A stretch of DNA of 63,781 nucleotides, counting the filler, from Klebsormidium nitens (taxonomy: Eukaryota > Plantae > Klebsormidiophyceae), in the NCBI GenBank assembly GCA_000708835.1. It is 9 parts of 9 records of this genome, joined end to end, with 100 filler letters (N's around TTAATTAATTAA, not from the genome) between each part and the next. Parts side by side here need not be neighbours in the genome. Positions count along the whole stretch, not along the records: positions 60,560 to 63,781 come from DF238353.1; 8 more parts are not named here. One strand, 5' to 3'. A model generated the notes under the pieces. The model saw only the letters and a program-made list of their open reading frames with translations, made no database searches and had not been told where the DNA came from. Of the stretch, positions 5,101 to 63,781 are shown piece by piece. Made by a program: the position numbers and the translations under genes. Numbering within the stretch: the first letter of the stretch is position 1; each line of letters opens with the position of its first letter.

Positions 5101-5860
5101 CCAAACTCCCGTCGCACCGGTCTGGGGGCACAATGGACTCCGTCATTATCTCAACCCCTGAGGGGCGGTTTGTGGCAAAAAGGAAGGTATTGCCTTGGTT
5201 GTTGAGGCAGCCAAACTGGGAGTTTTTGGTGAACTCGCCAATGCTCGCCCAAGCTGTGAGCGGCACAACCGGACTGCAGGCCCGAGGCTGAACGTTCACC
5301 TTATAGTACAACTGCGTGTCGTACGTTTTGTCCATATAAGAACGCTCCTCTGCGGCCGCTAGGAGAGCATTTGCTGTCGCCTGGTTTGCGTTAAGAAGCC
5401 AGAAACTGCTCCCAATCCCGGCCCGAACAACAGAAAGGGCGTCTGCAGGCCCCGGCCGGTTTGGAGCAACACCTGTCACCAGAATCCTATCCATGATTGC
5501 GCAGTTGTCGTCTGCACAGCGCAAAAGCTTATAGAAAATTTCTACAGTAACCTTTCCCCCAATCCCGCCCTTGGAGTAGAAGCCCCTGAGAGGGGAAATG
5601 GTGCGAGCAGCACTTATGGGATCTGCGTCCGCGCTTATGTTGTTCACCAGAGCATAAGCGTTGGTGCCAGCATTGTTGCGCTGGGTCAGCAGCCTGTAAT
5701 AGGCGAAACCGGACCCCAGCTTATTGATGTAATAAGCACCCAGCTCAGGGGTGACCGTGGAAGGGATTACAATGAGGCCCGCATTTTGAGCTTGCGTTGA
5801 CGAGACAAAGAGGATAATCAGACAGACCAGAGCAGAGTAGACCGCCATTTTTGGTGACAT
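2158..5860 (-). CDS. Unknown 712-aa membrane protein: signal peptide, ~450-aa Cys-containing ectodomain, ~3 TM helices, cytosolic tail; join(4502..5860, 2158..2937)
   Basis: ORF 4469..5872 has a hydrophobic signal peptide after MSPKMAVY and ends NIFPQ at a donor CAG|GTGCGT (4502/4501). ORF 2158..3099 has branch-like GCTGAC then CAG|GTG at 2938/2937. Both junctions are phase 0, giving ...NIFPQ-VSIDFETTK... Exon 2 is GC-rich with hydrophobic segments (LAVEVALASAGIII; VALMITALGITLFNIPNFALI; AAIGLILYFITLFGSLYLTW). No family recognised; extra small exons in the intron cannot be excluded. Confidence 0.7.
3050..3440 (-). repeat. Two degenerate tandem duplicates of the exon-2 acceptor and exon start of the 712-aa gene
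   Basis: GCTGACGTCATC occurs three times (+ strand gatgacgtcagc at 2942-2953, 3128-3139, 3429-3440). The copy starting at 3112 aligns codon for codon with the true exon start (GTG TTG ACC GAC TGT GAG TAG ACC AAG vs GTG TCG ATC GAC TTC GAG ACG ACC AAG). The copy at ~3345-3440 is more decayed. Confidence 0.8.
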
Positions 5861-17279: not shown

Positions 17280-18400
17280 GCTTCTTTTCGAATAATGATT
17301 ACAACTGTGAACAGACAAATACGCTCATCGTGAGCGTCATACCAATGCTCGTTCGCTTCATTGGTTGGACCACCAAGAGCTTGCTATTGAGGGTGGCCAA
17401 GTATATACTCTCCGACCTCTTCGACATCACCAACATAGGTTTGCACACGTCCAACATATGCGAATATGCACAAGCTCGAAGAGCTCCGTACTCTCCTTGG
17501 AAAGCGGCTTCCGAGGTTGCTCCCCGAACGATGCAAGCCTTCGCACATCGAAGTCCTCTCCTCTCAAAACGCCTCAGCTTTGACTTTTTGACATACCATG
17601 TTCGTGAATTTGAACGCGCGCCTCGCGGGCCCTCAACCATTTGGGCCAGACTCTCACTGCCGGCGTGCCCCAATCTTTGGTGCCATGTGCACCACAGAGC
17701 TCTCGGCTTCTTGCACAAGCAATCATGTTTCATCGGGCACGTGCCCCAAGCGTTCTTTGTCGCTTTCAAGCTTCAAGAAGCATGACCTCACCGTCCAAAA
17801 ACATTTTGCGCTCGTCATCGCAGAACACATTCTCGGCCCCTACAGTGGTAAGCCTAAAACTCCACCGAGAAAGAGGATTCCCGCAACACCGGAACATTTA
17901 TGCTATCTAATGTGGACAAAGTGAAACTGCTCGCCAGCTGGCGTTCCACATGGATCGCAACTCCATGGTGCCAACCCCGGCTACCGCGAGGAACGCCTCG
18001 TTTCATAACTAAATCGCCCGAATCCCCCGCTCAAGCATCATCGATCATGTGTAGAAAACAAATTCTACTCATTCCCATCATGTGTTGACGACTTCAATCC
18101 ACCCTCCGTTCTTTGTCCCTACTCCGGCTACAAGAGCAACTCCTTGCCGGCCCCCTCCTCCTTTAAGCAATACCTTATGAAATGGTCCAGGCTACTATTG
18201 AAATGTAGCATGATCTTTTTCCCGACGACTTGGGCTTTTCGGGCCCCCAACACAAGCAATCAAAGTTCAGAATGCCGCCTTTCACCCAGCCACCTGTGCC
18301 GCCCAAGTGGGACATTTGGGAATGCTTGTTTTCGATTGGCTCGCGGATCTCAGGCAAGGGCCGTGCGTGACGTAGGCAGTTTTCCAACATTATACCGAGC
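17280..18400 (-). mobile_element. Degraded Ty1/copia internal region (gag knuckle/protease remnants, GAG-pre-integrase, integrase start)
   Basis: ORF 17299..17769 contains WHQRLGH (17665-17685) followed by integrase-like LDVCKPM..SKRSESIYLAT..SKLLVVQPMK. Multiple frameshifts. Confidence 0.75.
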
Positions 18401-18716
18401 TGTCAAGGGAGTAAAGTTGACACTACGGTAGTGCACTGAAGCTACACTAAATATTAGTAATCTAGTATCCAATTTGAAGTGCTGAAGTCACGGGGTTCAT
18501 TATCGCGCGCGACGGTTCAAATTTAAAATAACCGAACCAAAGGACGTACGTGAAACGTTCTTATTCCTGGTGAGCATGGAATCTTGAGGCGCGAGAGCGC
18601 CTGGTGATAAACTTCTCGGAGAGAAGGTGGTGTAAAGATTACACCTTTGGTGGAATTCCAGAAACTACATGTCTCATTCTTGCTCCCTCTTGGGAATTGC
18701 ATGCATAATCTGAGGT

Positions 18717-60559: not shown

Positions 60560-61285
60560 TCCGTCGCTCCAACGGAGGCCGACGTCGAGCAGGCCAGGGA
60601 CTTCGTGGATGCTCTGCAGGGGGACGACGGCCACGTGATCACCGAGATGCGTCTGAGCGACGGCTACATCTCTGCCACGAAGATGTGTCAATCTGCTGGA
60701 AGGCACATGAGCGACTATATGAGACTCAACTCTACGAATGAGTTCATGGTGGCATTGGCTGATAGCCTCGGCCGACCGAAATCAAAGCTGACGGACCGCT
60801 GCAAGATGGGGGCAGTTGCCAAACGAGATACCTGGGTCCACCCACGGGTTGCCACACACCTAGCCATGTGGATAAGTGCGGACTTCGAGGTGAAGGTATC
60901 AGGATGGATCGAAGAAGCTCGTAGGGGACTTCGTGGCATCAACCAGGATTACATATGTGCTTTAGCAAACCTGAAAGCACGCAAGGGGAATGATTTGTTG
61001 GAGGCGAAAGTGCGAGATAGAATAGCAGAACAAGAGAATGGTCGGGTAGAAGTAGCATGTGAGTACGGTATAGTAGACGTACTCACACCGATGGCTATCA
61101 TAGAGGTCAAACGAAGCAATAGCTTTCTACACGCGTTAGGCCAGGTGTTAGGCTACGCGGAATCATTTCCGGGACACAGAAAGTGGATTCATCTGATACT
61201 AGAGAACGACGAAGACGATCTTTTGAACAGAGCCAAAACAGTGTGCAATAAACACGGTGTTGAGGTGACGTGCGAAACCGCATGA
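60560..61285 (+). CDS. KilA-N domain protein with C-terminal PD-(D/E)XK nuclease (5' end in gap), intronless, giant-virus-like
   Basis: KilA-N: ITEMRLSDGYISATKMC...TWVHPRVATHLAMWISADFEVKV. Nuclease: LEAKVRD...EVACEYGIVDVLTPMAIIEVKRSNSFLHALGQVLGY...KWIHL. Confidence 0.85.
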   Translation, partial: SVAPTEADVEQARDFVDALQGDDGHVITEMRLSDGYISATKMCQSAGRHMSDYMRLNSTNEFMVALADSLGRPKSKLTDRCKMGAVAKRDTWVHPRVATHLAMWISADFEVKVSGWIEEARRGLRGINQDYICALANLKARKGNDLLEAKVRDRIAEQENGRVEVACEYGIVDVLTPMAIIEVKRSNSFLHALGQVLGYAESFPGHRKWIHLILENDEDDLLNRAKTVCNKHGVEVTCETA

Positions 61286-61338
61286 TAAGCTGGTCGTATC
61301 TGCATGGACTTTTCGGAGAAGAGTCTGCTCACAGACAA

Positions 61339-61345
61339 TATAAAA
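61339..61345 (+). promoter_or_regulatory. TATA box of KilA-N cassette B
   Basis: TATAAAA ~50 nt upstream of the ATG at 61397 (caaaagATGG). Related AATATAAGAA/GATATAAGAA motifs follow cassettes B and C. Confidence 0.5.
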
Positions 61346-61396
61346 TGTGCTTCCAGATATCCTTTTCAGTCATTTCCAGAGTCCACTCTCCAAAAG

Positions 61397-62777
61397 ATGG
61401 CACCCGCATCGCGTCCCATACTCGCCGTCTCGGCGACCGGCACCATGACCCGGTATCATAGCAAGCGTGCCGCTTCCGAGGCTACCGGTATTCCCGCGGC
61501 GAGCGTAGCTTTCGCCGCCTCCAATCTCGCCCTGCGCGATGGCCGTCTGTGGAAGTTCGAAGACGACCCCCGACAGGTAGACATGAGCCGCTTTCAGGCG
61601 GTTCGAGAGCAGGTCGTCGCTCCAACGGAGGCCGACGTCGAGCAGGCCAGGGACTTCGTGGATGCTCTGCGGGGAGATGACGGCCGCATGATCACCGAGA
61701 TGCGCCTGAGCGACGGCTACGTCTCCGCCACGAAGATGTGCCAGTCTGCGAGCAAGATGTGGGGACATTACAATGCCGTTGAAGGCAACCTGGCCTTCAG
61801 GACCGCTCTGGCTGCATCTCTCCAGATTCCGATAGATGACCTTGTCCAGTCCATAGCCAATGGTCCACTCTTCCAGAGAGGCACATGGGTGCACCCTCAG
61901 CTGGCCATTCACCTGGCGTCCTGGTGCTCGCCCACTTTTGCCGTCAAGGTCACGGCGCTCGTGCTCCGCTACCTGACCGGACAGGTCACCACAGAGGAGT
62001 CTCGGGCCGCAGCCAAGACCGTCGCCGAGCGCGCTGCTCCACCCGAGGAGACAGACGAAGACTCGAGAGCCCTCAAACGCCTGAAGGTGACGCACGAGAT
62101 CGAGCTAGTGAAGACGAAGCACGCTAACGAGATGGCGAATCACGCCAATGAGTTGGCGAAATTGCAGTCAGAGACGTCTCGCCTGCGCATGGAGAGCACT
62201 CGAGAGCTCATGGAGGGAAGCAAGCGCTTGATCGATGGCTTGGCGTCCGGCATCGCACCTCCTGCCTTGACCGGCATGATCAACATCGCGCGCCACAACC
62301 TCGCCATCAAGTGCCTCGCGGTGTTGGGGCCGAGCGACCCGCCCGCATCCGATCCCGGCACCGAAGCACCCGTGGCGCCTCCGCCCGTCGCCGCCGCACG
62401 ACGCGTCACCGTCCAGGAGTTCGGCAGGGATATCTTGGGTCTGAGGGGCGACCAACTGGCGACGGCGCGACTCTCGGTCGTCGGCGGCAAGCTCGGCAGG
62501 ATGTGGAAGAGCCAGCCGGGCAAGGGCGAGATCGTGGAGCTCGTCTCGAGCGAATTCAGGAGAGAAGTCGTGGAAGCGCACGGCCGTGGAGAACGGGGCG
62601 CCGCACACGTCCACGTTTTCGGGCCCGCTGGACGCAACGATGCTGGCAAACAATCGCATCAAGTTCTCAGCTGCATACCTGGGCACCAACGAGATCGGGA
62701 ACGGACAGGCATACGACGTCTGGACCTATCAGCTGAACGAGGTCGAGAACTTGATGCGCGAGGCGTTTCAGAACTAG
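61397..62777 (+). pseudogene. NUMOD1-like HTH + KilA-N + coiled coil + unknown C-terminal domain; 4-nt insertion frameshift at ~62550
   Basis: RPILAVSATG..RYHSKRAASEATGI...RLWKF (NUMOD1-like) and RLSDGYVSATKMC...GTWVHPQLAIHLASWCSPTFAVKV (KilA-N). TCTCGAGCGAATTC here vs TCTCGAATTC in the next copy; removing GCGA joins the frame to ...EVENLMREAFQN*. Confidence 0.8.
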
Positions 62778-63259
62778 TAGCTCTAGTACAATTCAAGCAT
62801 GATCCGGCGGCCGGCTGATTGTCGTACATACGGGCAACAATATAAGAATTTGAACTTCCAGCAGTGTAGCTCTTACTCTCCATTTGCANNNNNNNNNNNN
62901 NNNNNNNNNNNNNNNNNNNNNNNNNNNNNNNNNNNNNNNNNNNNNNNNNNNNNNNNNNNNNNNNNNNNNNNNNNNNNNNNNNNNNNNNNNNNNNNNNNNN
63001 NNNNNNNNNNNNNNNNNNNNNNNNNNNNNNNNNNNNNNNNNNNNNNNNNNNNNNNNNNNNNNNNNNNNNNNNNNNNNNNNNNNNNNNNNNNNNNNNNNNN
63101 NNNNNNNNNNNNNNNNNNNNNNNNNNNNNNNNNNNNNNNNNNNNNNNNNNNNNNNNNNNNNNNNNNNNNNNNNNNNNNNNNNNNNNNNNNNNNNNNNNNN
63201 NNNNNNNNNNNNNNNNNNNNNNNNNNNNNNNNNNNNNNNNNNNNNNNNNNNNNNNNNNN

Positions 63260-63670
63260 GGAGCACCCGTGGCGCCTCAGCCCGTCGCCGTCGCACGACG
63301 CGTTACCGTCCAGGAGTTCGGCAGGGATATCTTGGGTCTGAGGGGCGACCAACTGGCGACGGCGCGACTCTCGGTCGTCGGCGGCAAGCTCGGCAGGATG
63401 TGGAAGAGCCAGCCGGGCAAGGGCGAGATCGTGGAGCTCGTCTCGAATTCAGGAGAGAAGTCGTGGAAGCGCACGGCCGTGGAGAACGGGGCGCCGCACA
63501 CGTCCACGTTTTTGGGCCCACTGGACGCAACGATGCTGGCAAACAACCGCATCAAGTTCTCAGCTGCATACCTGGGCACCAACGAGATCGGGAACGGACA
63601 GGCATACGACGTCTGGACCTATCAGCTGAACGAGGTCGAGAACTTGATGCGCGAGGCGTTTCAGAACTAG
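63260..63670 (+). CDS. 3' part of a further copy of the cassette-B gene, frame intact (5' part in gap)
   Basis: Close but non-identical copy of ~62365-62888, including the downstream spacer. Reads VSNSGEKSWKRTAVENG...MREAFQN* without the frameshift. Confidence 0.8.
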   Translation, partial: GAPVAPQPVAVARRVTVQEFGRDILGLRGDQLATARLSVVGGKLGRMWKSQPGKGEIVELVSNSGEKSWKRTAVENGAPHTSTFLGPLDATMLANNRIKFSAAYLGTNEIGNGQAYDVWTYQLNEVENLMREAFQN

Positions 63671-63781
63671 TAGCTCTAGTACAATTCAAGCATGATCCGG
63701 CGGCCGGCTGATTGGCGTACATACTGGCAACGATATAAGAACTTGAACTTCCAGCAGTGTAGCTCTTACTCTCCATTTGTG

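Follow-up and report, generated by a model that had tools for sequence, protein, structure and literature searches.

What process leaves two neighbouring genes beginning with almost the same DNA and ending in different proteins? The question is raised by the last piece, 3.2 kb long (positions 60,560 to 63,781, from DF238353.1), of the window, by which we mean the whole stretch of 63,781 nucleotides that was analysed, joined from nine parts of nine records of the Klebsormidium nitens genome (GCA_000708835.1). A sequence-only reading of this piece had proposed a head-to-tail array of KilA-N cassettes belonging to an algal nucleus, in which recombination at a conserved anchor exchanges recognition and effector modules in the manner of polymorphic toxins. 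Our analysis points to two tandem paralogues, here A and B, whose near-identical front ends would reflect recurrent gene conversion and not old conservation, a reading to which, taken as a whole, we give a probability of about 0.75. The features of the piece are the following.

60560-61285, + strand: gene A, KilA-N (from the ORF and Pfam) plus a predicted PD-(D/E)XK nuclease, stop TGA at 61283-61285, 5'-truncated by the edge of the piece
60562-60696, + strand: A copy of the shared 5' module, of which the last 135 nt alone lie in the piece, ending at the ATKMCQSA codons
60983-61282, + strand: predicted PD-(D/E)XK nuclease domain of A, equal to residues 214-313 of the homologue P0001 (fold comparison, conserved residues)
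61286-61396, + strand: A-B spacer, the putative promoter region of B, with TATA-like ACAATATAA at 61335-61343, CTTCCAG at 61350-61356 and ACTCTCCA at 61385-61392
61397-62777, + strand: gene B, with a small putative DNA-binding domain at the N-terminus, KilA-N, a putative coiled coil and a C-terminal domain (CTD) of no known fold; true-frame stop TAG at 62775-62777
61397-61749, + strand: complete shared 5' module in B, comprising the NUMOD-like small domain, a linker and the first KilA-N strands to ATKMCQSA
61750-61880, + strand: mid-KilA-N patch in B, between the ATKMCQSA(G/S)K and GTWVHP motifs, swapped relative to locus L001
62055-62245, + strand: putative coiled coil in B, a charged heptad-like stretch read from sequence
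62363-62774, + strand: B copy of the CTD, disrupted by a frameshift
62778-62888, + strand: post-B spacer, whose promoter-like core resembles that of the A-B spacer
62889-63259, no strand: assembly gap, 371 N of estimated length
63260-63670, + strand: fragment C, an in-frame copy of the CTD, 97.5% identical to the B tail, stop TAG at 63668-63670, lacking the 5' part
63671-63781, + strand: post-C spacer, with its end at the repeat coordinate where the contig before the gap also stops

The repeat that prompted the earlier proposal is real. Nucleotide alignment of 60562-60696 with 61615-61749, the latter lying within the B module, gives 93% identity over 135 nt, the copies differing at 10 positions. 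Past the end of the repeat, identity between A and B drops from 0.92 to 0.44 overall and from 0.84 to 0.28 at third codon positions, and dS rises from 0.27 to saturation; the dN/dS figures of the shared tract are low (0.04 / 0.27). A maximum chi-square scan placed the break at 60696 in A and 61749 in B, with a value reached in 0 of 2000 permutations, so that the abrupt switch at ATKMCQSA holds for this pair and gradual divergence without a breakpoint does not describe it. The sequence after the break had been called unrelated, which is correct for the DNA and wrong for the fold, since the two proteins remain homologous KilA-N halves, of low identity, downstream of it.

The likeness between the genes extends upstream of their coding parts. 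The A stop codon and the B start codon (ATG at 61397) are separated by a 111-nt spacer, as had been noted before, and the A-B and post-B spacers, neither of which holds an ORF, share ACAATATAA, CTTCCAG and ACTCTCCA in identical order. The local alignment score of the two spacers was 27 (shuffled: 14.2 ± 2.2; 2 of 2000 shuffles reach 27), and three collinear 7-mers between them were matched by 11 of 5000 shuffles, in agreement with the earlier remark on common spacer motifs. The exact pattern of the post-B spacer had no match in metagenome or viral contig sets. We also considered TATA..CTTCCAG as a general promoter of these viral contigs and rejected it, because its occurrences across 150 kb of loci all lie upstream of close copies of the family. 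The module common to the two genes takes in the promoter plus about 350 nt of coding DNA, or ~118 residues.

The domains carried by this common front end were assessed in models and family searches. By comparison with P0001, a 313-aa homologue, ~72 codons of A are absent from the piece; P0001 and A are 94% identical with 100% of the query covered, and a collinear counterpart of A is present in L001. Both proteins matched Pfam KilA-N (PF04383; cut-off 23.8), A with 69.8 bits (2.1e-19) and B with 57.0 bits. Residues 82-191 of the A-type model resemble the APSES/Mbp1-like fold of 1bm8 (Z 7.7, rmsd 3.2, 90 aligned), and the KilA-N region resembles Bqt4 (Z 6.8); these Z values are moderate and agree with the Pfam match. 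For the small domain in front of it, comparison gave 8b6e_A (Z 7.3, rmsd 1.6, 30% identity) and I-HmuI (1u3e_M residues 116-174; Z 6.6, rmsd 3.3, 57 aligned), values that are below 8 and belong to a small domain. In Pfam, NUMOD1 scored 12.4 bits (E 0.2) for the A gene of L001, under the cut-off of 22.8, and did not match window B. These comparisons suggest that the shared front end is a small NUMOD-like putative DNA-binding domain followed by the first KilA-N strands.

In A this front end runs into a predicted nuclease, as the earlier reading had stated. Residues 214-313 of the A-type model, with pLDDT above 90, form an alpha-beta-beta-beta-alpha-beta core (H215-230, E234-239, E242-247, E251-257, H258-271, E279-286), for which the best match was NucS (2vld_A: Z 10.4, rmsd 2.1, 89 aligned, 29% identity in VIA-align), with further matches to EndoMS (5gke_A, Z 9.2), CdiA-CT (4g6u/4zqu) and PaqCI (8em1). 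E220, D245, E254, K256 and Q267 do not vary among 19 sequences, window A included, that are 33-94% identical. The GC content of this domain is just 44-48%. The PDB sequence search with A returned chance matches only, Foldseek with the whole three-domain model gave no match with E below 0.001, and PADLOC and NCBIfam searches of A and B found no match; the fold assignments come from VIA-align, which separated the domains after the whole-model Foldseek search. Since a shared DNA-binding front end runs into a NucS-like PD-(D/E)XK nuclease, A is a probable sequence-directed DNA endonuclease, a role in which we infer both the nuclease activity and the DNA binding.

Gene B ends differently, and its description as a coiled coil plus a domain of no known family stands, with the coiled coil as a putative one; that region differs from L001 by 21 nt (7 aa) in repeat number, a 21-column gap in the alignment. 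For fragment C the same description fails in part, as C is a CTD copy only and contains no KilA-N sequence. A 4-bp insertion near 62547-62550 shifts the frame of B relative to C and all relatives. The CTD had no family or fold match in Pfam, PHROGs, ESM Atlas or BFVD, a wide fold search of the PDB gave a best Z of 3.1 and no usable lead, and its distant relatives likewise lacked a Pfam match. Only 20 cluster representatives were found among 1.84 billion proteins, and the CTD is a narrow, lineage-restricted domain without recognisable fold. Three long antisense ORFs (241, 173 and 169 aa) had no family match and were taken as by-products of high GC.

How the front ends came to be alike was examined across 12 gene copies from 13 loci. 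L001, an independent gap-free contig from another project, has the A-then-B order of the window and is 91.7% identical to it over 2249 nt; there the duplicated unit consists of 62 nt of the A tail, the spacer and the module. L013, the closest relative, has a B gene and no A gene; in L006, B precedes A at a distance of 1.3 kb. In the N-module tree, three clades (support 97/99, 99/99 and 99/100) each mix nuclease and coiled-coil genes, and grouping follows viral lineage. In the tree of the KilA-N end segment, nuclease and coiled-coil types split at 100/100. Identity matrices computed alongside the trees showed the module homogenised across types in three separate lineages; within lineage I, identity is 92-95% across nuclease and coiled-coil genes alike. 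Because the module groups by lineage while the end segment groups by type, the trees argue for recurrent gene conversion.

Exchange also reached beyond the module. Sliding identity between window B and L001 falls to about 0.5 only in 61750-61880, the locus being otherwise 95-100% identical, and the three mid-segment types found are combined with both C-terminal types, in a four-gamete pattern. In L002 a B-type gene contains an A-like tract that matches window A at 97-98% identity and extends about 75 nt beyond ATKMCQSA, and the deep split of the C-terminal types is located at GTWVHP. Breakpoint positions thus vary among ATKMCQSA, about 75 nt downstream of it, and GTWVHP. Recombination at conserved KilA-N motifs, as suggested before, is upheld and is recurrent; ATKMCQSA as its single breakpoint is not, and the proposed clustering of breakpoints at ATKMC gives way, in this sample, to a spread over at least three positions. 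We suggest that A and B are tandem paralogues with one promoter type and a ~118-residue front end in common and different ends, that homologous recombination between adjacent or ectopic paralogues would repeatedly overwrite the promoter and 5' module by ordinary gene conversion or unequal crossing-over, that the most conserved KilA-N motifs (ATKMCQSAGK and GTWVHP) may serve as crossover homology, and that the short segment between them would be swapped as well. The domains, the break, the mosaicism, the concerted evolution and the viral context are observed; conversion or unequal crossing-over is the presumed mechanism.

The same trees would be expected if strong selection, and not neutral conversion, kept the A and B front ends identical. 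One such explanation is that the two genes are coupled, the A nuclease and the non-catalytic B having to read the same DNA sites as nuclease and guardian or regulator, with selection holding the module identical in each viral lineage. It would account for a module that is homogenised between types in three lineages while the effector halves stay distinct, for the adjacency and common promoter of the genes, and for the low dN/dS of the shared tract. We consider it unlikely, as L013 has B without A, the order in L006 is reversed with 1.3 kb in between, window B is frameshifted, and concerted evolution of adjacent paralogues requires no coupling. If it were true, front-end conversion and mid-segment swaps would re-set the specificity of both partners jointly in each viral lineage, which would be the counterpart, in a eukaryotic virus, of the exchange of specificity modules in restriction systems.

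Another explanation, close to the original proposal, is a selected polymorphic cassette system in which the KilA-N anchor is a dedicated recombination site that exchanges recognition and effector cassettes, silent 3' ones such as C included. In the wider family the N module is indeed joined to at least three C-termini (the nuclease, the coiled coil with the CTD, and a third one seen in P0049/P0050), and the CTD is found behind other N-termini too; the mid-segment and C-terminal types show a four-gamete pattern, and C looks like an orphan 3' cassette with a promoter-like spacer in front of it. This explanation is nonetheless improbable, and a programmed cassette system is not supported: breakpoints lie at three or more positions, C is of the same type as B and not an alternative to it, L001 and L013 have no further cassettes, the unit has no recombinase, immunity gene or secretion domain, and many family copies are pseudogenes. 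Of the multi-cassette array, two genes are left, for L001 holds no third family copy and C is a variant of the B tail. A further cassette after the post-B spacer was rejected, as the conserved spacer of L013 continues into non-KilA sequence with no family gene beyond it; the cassettes expected past the window end are not supported. Nor would a full gene fit in the gap at its estimated length. The flanks of the gap are not one reading frame: the left ends in the post-B spacer, 111 nt past the true-frame stop of B, and the right opens inside a gene, at what corresponds to B position 62363, so that 966 nt of 5' sequence are missing, more than 371 N can hold. Homogenisation affects the putative DNA-binding front end and promoter, and the effector halves are not dealt from silent cassettes.

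Polymorphic toxin systems likewise have a conserved 5' part, alternative 3' ends and possible 3' orphan fragments. Unlike them, the window genes have a putative DNA-binding module at the N-terminus and no secretion or trafficking domain; the gene after A is its paralogue B and not an immunity gene; and there is no array of alternative 3' orphans, the one candidate, C, being 97.5% identical to the B tail and L001 and L013 having none. With these hallmarks absent, the toxin analogy was dropped.

It is very unlikely that a collapsed repeat in a short-read scaffold has produced the A/B identity tract, or the entire array, as a chimera. The scaffold begins inside the shared module, contains a gap, and has a duplicated tail whose copies end at one coordinate, all of which would fit such an artefact; yet the module copies differ at 10 positions, and gene order and junctions are the same in L001, an N-free contig of another project. 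The artefact plausibly applies to fragment C only. C and its following spacer are a 522-nt copy of the B tail and spacer with 13 substitutions and one 4-bp indel, C is 96.1% identical to L013, and the contigs before and after the gap end at an identical repeat coordinate; C is possibly a variant contig set there by the scaffolder. Stronger purifying selection on the 5' part of an anciently duplicated pair, with no recombination, draws on DGY..ATKMCQSAGK, which even among distant proteins is the best-conserved motif of KilA-N, but has next to no probability, being already contradicted by synonymous divergence of 0.27 in the shared tract against saturation downstream and by an N-module tree that follows lineage and not type; the duplication also takes in the non-coding promoter and 62 nt from the tail of the gene in front of it.

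The earlier reading had placed the system in an algal nucleus; a host nuclear invention is not supported. The loci of the family lie on K. nitens scaffolds (including DF237338.1) and metagenome contigs beside giant-virus genes; the relatives L002-L005 carry the hallmark NCLDV genes D5 primase-helicase, the Pox_A22 resolvase, dNK and TBP, and ATG8 is also found in such neighbourhoods. An N-module alignment search found no relatives in IMG/VR or the JGI metagenome scan. Relatives are located on K. nitens nuclear-assembly scaffolds and many are pseudogenised, with broken copies in the window (B), L002, L003, L006 and L013. According to PMC5294986, Klebsormidium contains NCLDV core genes, and in K. 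nitens the viral genes are methylated (PMC12344493). Judging by the neighbourhoods of its relatives, the gene pair appears to derive from a giant virus (Nucleocytoviricota, phycodnavirus-like), and the piece is most likely endogenous viral DNA of a Klebsormidium-type alga.

KilA-N and Bro-N proteins of large DNA viruses and phages are reportedly domain-shuffled regulator families. The window family is like them in its N-terminal KilA-N with varied C-terminal modules and in its expansion in a nucleocytoplasmic large DNA virus. It differs in the extra NUMOD-like domain before KilA-N, in C-termini that are a NucS-like PD-(D/E)XK nuclease or an undescribed domain, and in shuffling that appears as ongoing nucleotide-level conversion between neighbours and not just as ancient architectures. 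Baculovirus bro is another multicopy DNA-binding gene family of large DNA viruses, whose copy number and composition change by recombination, duplication and loss (PMC3230853, section 2.5, citing Bideshi et al.); it has Bro-N where the window has NUMOD-like plus KilA-N, host and virus group differ, and that source describes no nuclease partner. With NucS/EndoMS and PD-(D/E)XK nucleases (2vld, 5gke), A residues 214-313 share the fold and the E...D...ExK...Q pattern, but the catalytic domain alone matches, identity is at most 29%, and the N-terminal dimerisation/DNA-binding domain of NucS is replaced by NUMOD-like plus KilA-N. A resembles free-standing homing endonucleases of the I-HmuI type in having a nuclease domain and in being present at one related locus and absent from another (L001 versus L013), and its small N-terminal domain may be comparable to the part of I-HmuI that binds DNA (Z 6.6), whereas the window nuclease is of the PD-(D/E)XK class, the NUMOD1 score is below threshold (12.4 versus 22.8 bits), and the L001/L013 indel includes a phosphatase gene too. 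As in the NCLDV inserts (GEVEs) surveyed in Klebsormidium (PMC5294986), the loci related to the window genes carry NCLDV core genes inside K. nitens scaffolds, and many copies are decayed; the available text of that survey mentions neither this gene family nor its mosaic structure.

The pair is a clear example of known viral gene-family evolution and not a new cassette machine. For annotation it carries two warnings, as K. nitens gene models in related regions fuse separate viral ORFs and small gapped scaffolds can mimic arrays. We found no earlier description of an architecture of NUMOD-like domain, KilA-N and NucS-like PD-(D/E)XK nuclease. The locus offers a clean nucleotide-level example of how giant-virus multigene families, and their endogenous copies in a streptophyte alga near land plants, get remodelled: conversion would keep the front end and promoter uniform and leave the effector ends distinct, while a short KilA-N segment is exchanged.

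Positions 60560–63781 of the window (the piece) are laid out as follows:

60560 (edge of the piece) to the TGA at 61283–61285, plus strand: gene A, an open reading frame with KilA-N and a PD-(D/E)XK nuclease domain.
61397 (its ATG, separated from A by a 111-nt spacer) to the true-frame stop TAG at 62775–62777, plus strand: gene B, with KilA-N, a putative coiled coil and a C-terminal domain (CTD).
62889–63259: 371 N, the sole such run in the piece.
63260–63670, plus strand: fragment C, a coding stretch beyond the gap, a second copy of the tail of B.

The start of gene B is conserved in its homologues as MAP(A/P)SRP. Pfam scored KilA-N at 69.8 bits in A and 57 bits in B, with PHROGs in agreement; fragment C gave no Pfam match, KilA-N included. 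The long minus-strand ORFs of the piece gave no protein-family match and were taken as by-products of the ~60% GC content. Since the GC content of the nuclease half of A is 44–48% (60860–61360) compared to 58–69% in the shared module and gene B, gene A is a compositional chimera.

A repeat search recovered a 135-nt direct repeat in A and B (60562–60696 and 61615–61749; 93% identical), and alignment of the two genes showed near-identity up to the codons for ATKMCQSA, inside KilA-N, and noise beyond. On a gapless codon alignment, the shared tract and the sequence past the break differed in nucleotide identity (0.92 vs. 0.44), third-position identity (0.84 vs. 0.28), dN (0.04 vs. 0.82) and dS (0.27 vs. 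saturated). The maximum chi-square breakpoint fell at 60696/61749, with 0 of 2000 permutations attaining the observed value; therefore, the abrupt switch that the sequence-only reading had placed at this position is genuine, and stronger protein constraint alone cannot explain it. Past the break, the two proteins are still homologous KilA-N halves. The spacers between A and B, after B and after C have ACAATATAA, CTTCCAG and ACTCTCCA in common, in the same order, a likeness modestly above chance (observed values attained by 2/2000 and 11/5000 shuffles).

The shared unit exceeds what was visible to the sequence-only reading. On L001, an ENA contig in which A is likewise followed by B and which shares 91.7% identity with the piece across 2249 nt, the unit consists of 62 nt of A-type gene tail, a spacer with a TATA-like element and ~350 nt of coding sequence, and occurs upstream of both genes. 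Immediately ahead of the promoter of A itself lies what is left of an A-type gene, roughly its final 20 codons (L001:2239–2300), which suggests that a longer tandem array of A-type genes once existed and has since contracted.

Trees and identities were then obtained from 12 gene copies cut into segments. Within viral lineage I (B of the window, A and B of L001, and the related loci L005 and L002), the N module was 92–95% identical across both types; B of locus L003 and A of L007 were 94% identical, B of L006 and A of L008 81%, and identity between lineages was 60–83%. The genes paired in lineage II come from different assemblies. The maximum-likelihood tree of the N module contained three mixed nuclease/coiled-coil clades (support 97/99, 99/99 and 99/100), and that of the KilA-N end segment separated the types at 100/100 with very long branches. 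Because the first tree mixes the types and the second separates them, the two types diverged long ago, and their front ends have repeatedly been made uniform. This concerted evolution would proceed via gene conversion or unequal crossing-over.

Mosaicism at a finer scale was also evident. B of the window and B of L001 were 95–100% identical except in a patch (61750–61880; ~50%) bounded by ATKMCQSAGK and GTWVHP. The B-type gene of L002 contains a tract 97–98% identical to A of the window that continues ~75 nt past ATKMCQSA before turning to B type again, and there are three mid-segment types, found with both C-terminal types. Several breakpoints thus exist, at or close to the best-conserved motifs, which is what exchange dependent on homology would predict.

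To the left of the gap lies non-coding sequence that starts past the true-frame stop of B, and the sequence to its right opens at a point corresponding to position 62363 of B, 966 nt from the start of that gene; therefore, the gap does not split one reading frame, and at 371 N it is too short for what a complete gene would lack. Fragment C, which has 13 substitutions and a 4-bp indel relative to the tail of B, may be a truncated tandem copy, but is best read as a variant contig (allele or second locus) scaffolded behind B, because gap-free L001 lacks a second B copy, the post-B spacer in L013 runs on into sequence without a KilA-N gene, and the contigs on both sides of the gap end at the same repeat coordinate. 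L013 is the closest relative of both B (94.3%) and C (96.1%). A 4-bp insertion near 62547–62550 puts B out of frame with C and every relative, and the gene either is a pseudogene or carries an assembly error. Between otherwise collinear flanks, L001 is ~1.6 kb longer than L013, the extra sequence comprising gene A, the A-tail remnant and a gene for a dual-specificity phosphatase; closely related elements thus differ in whether they carry gene A.

The best match of A is P0001, on L001 (313 aa; 94% identity). Modelled with AlphaFold (mean pLDDT 81.5), the full-length homologue of A has three domains. Residues 1–58, with matches to the DNA-binding end of I-HmuI (Z 6.6) and Paulinella DNA-binding protein 8b6e_A (Z 7.3, 30% identity) and a sub-threshold Pfam NUMOD1 match, are read as a NUMOD-like small DNA-binding domain; residues 82–191, KilA-N, match Mbp1 (Z 7.7); residues 214–313, the PD-(D/E)XK nuclease, match NucS (2vld_A; Z 10.4, 29% identity), followed in order by EndoMS, CdiA-CT toxins, PaqCI and Can2/Card1. 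All 19 sequences compared, with identity down to 33% and A of the window among them, keep E220, D245, E254, K256 and Q267. These structural matches and invariant nuclease residues make A a probable DNA endonuclease that two predicted DNA-binding modules would direct.

The CTD of B and C has a moderate-confidence fold (pLDDT 72) with no match in a wide PDB search (best Z 3.1) or in BFVD. Among 1.84 billion cluster representatives, a search by profile returned only 20 proteins at E <= 0.001; ten newly found ones, when scanned, had zero Pfam domains, KilA-N included, and P0048 and P0058 carry the CTD behind a different N-terminus. The putative coiled coil contains a 7-residue HANEMA(K/R/N) repeat (62084–62152) with a 21-nt copy-number difference from L001 and L013, the window having one unit fewer than L001, L005 and L013. 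Among related proteins, P0049 and P0050 share the N module and KilA-N but end in a third C-terminal type, which has a weak match (E 4e-5) to the C-terminal part of the phage regulator family phrog_2657, and P0052 (720 aa; JGI contig of 328 kb) has four tandem KilA-N domains (Pfam), then another C-terminal domain.

B-type genes are annotated in K. nitens (KFL_003890100 on DF237338.1, and two more scaffolds). Both in K. nitens and on JGI contigs of 28–128 kb, the family lies among giant-virus genes, with D5 primase-helicase, Pox_A22 resolvase, dNK, TBP, ATG8, SET, DNA methylase and a TnpB-like gene as neighbours; no relatives were found in IMG/VR or a JGI metagenome scan. Several copies carry disruptions: L002 (frameshifts and a stop codon), L003 (stop codon), L006 (A split), L013 (B split) and B of the window (frameshift). 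Based on this gene context and decay, the piece is read as giant-virus-derived DNA in a Klebsormidium-type genome, most likely endogenous. NCLDV core genes of 'phycodnavirus' affinity have been reported in Klebsormidium (PMC5294986), and methylated genes of K. nitens are enriched in genes of viral origin (PMC12344493).

Giant-virus-like contig L002 has genes for a homologue of ATG8 and for a TATA-binding protein (5245–5589 and 18302–18688), the latter of interest because family promoters have TATA-like boxes. On L006, also giant-virus-like, a Cas12f1/TnpB-like TNB-domain ORF (699–2306) adjoins a cytosine DNA methylase and may be a Fanzor-type element. The KFL_003890100 model (L005:10001–12994; 745 aa) joins a B-type gene to an upstream ORF with EsV-1-7 cysteine motifs and a CENDEDQH...RFNPD stretch, and looks like two viral ORFs fused by a eukaryotic annotator; in KFL_011150060 the same upstream stretch is combined with a gene of A type. 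DF237338.1 also carries, a short way upstream of its B-type gene (L005:11096–11190), 95 nt of the shared 5' module in inverted orientation, with 92.6% identity to 61655–61749 of the window.

The proposal that recombination at conserved KilA-N motifs re-associates front and back ends holds in substance. A dedicated cassette system of the algal nucleus, also proposed, is unsupported because the array is only a gene pair, its third element (C) is doubtful, breakpoints vary, polymorphic-toxin hallmarks are missing, and the context is viral and partly decayed. One of the closest known frames comes from large DNA viruses, the domain-shuffled KilA-N/Bro families reportedly described by Iyer et al. 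in 2002. The other is the baculovirus bro multigene family, described as recombining in PMC3230853. The architecture of NUMOD-like domain, KilA-N and NucS-like nuclease may be new, as may the orphan CTD of B and C and the keeping, by conversion, of a common DNA-recognition module in nuclease and non-nuclease paralogues of three lineages. Since conversion keeps this module common to both paralogues, there is room for the idea, a long shot in our estimation, that A and B are functionally coupled, both binding the same target sites.
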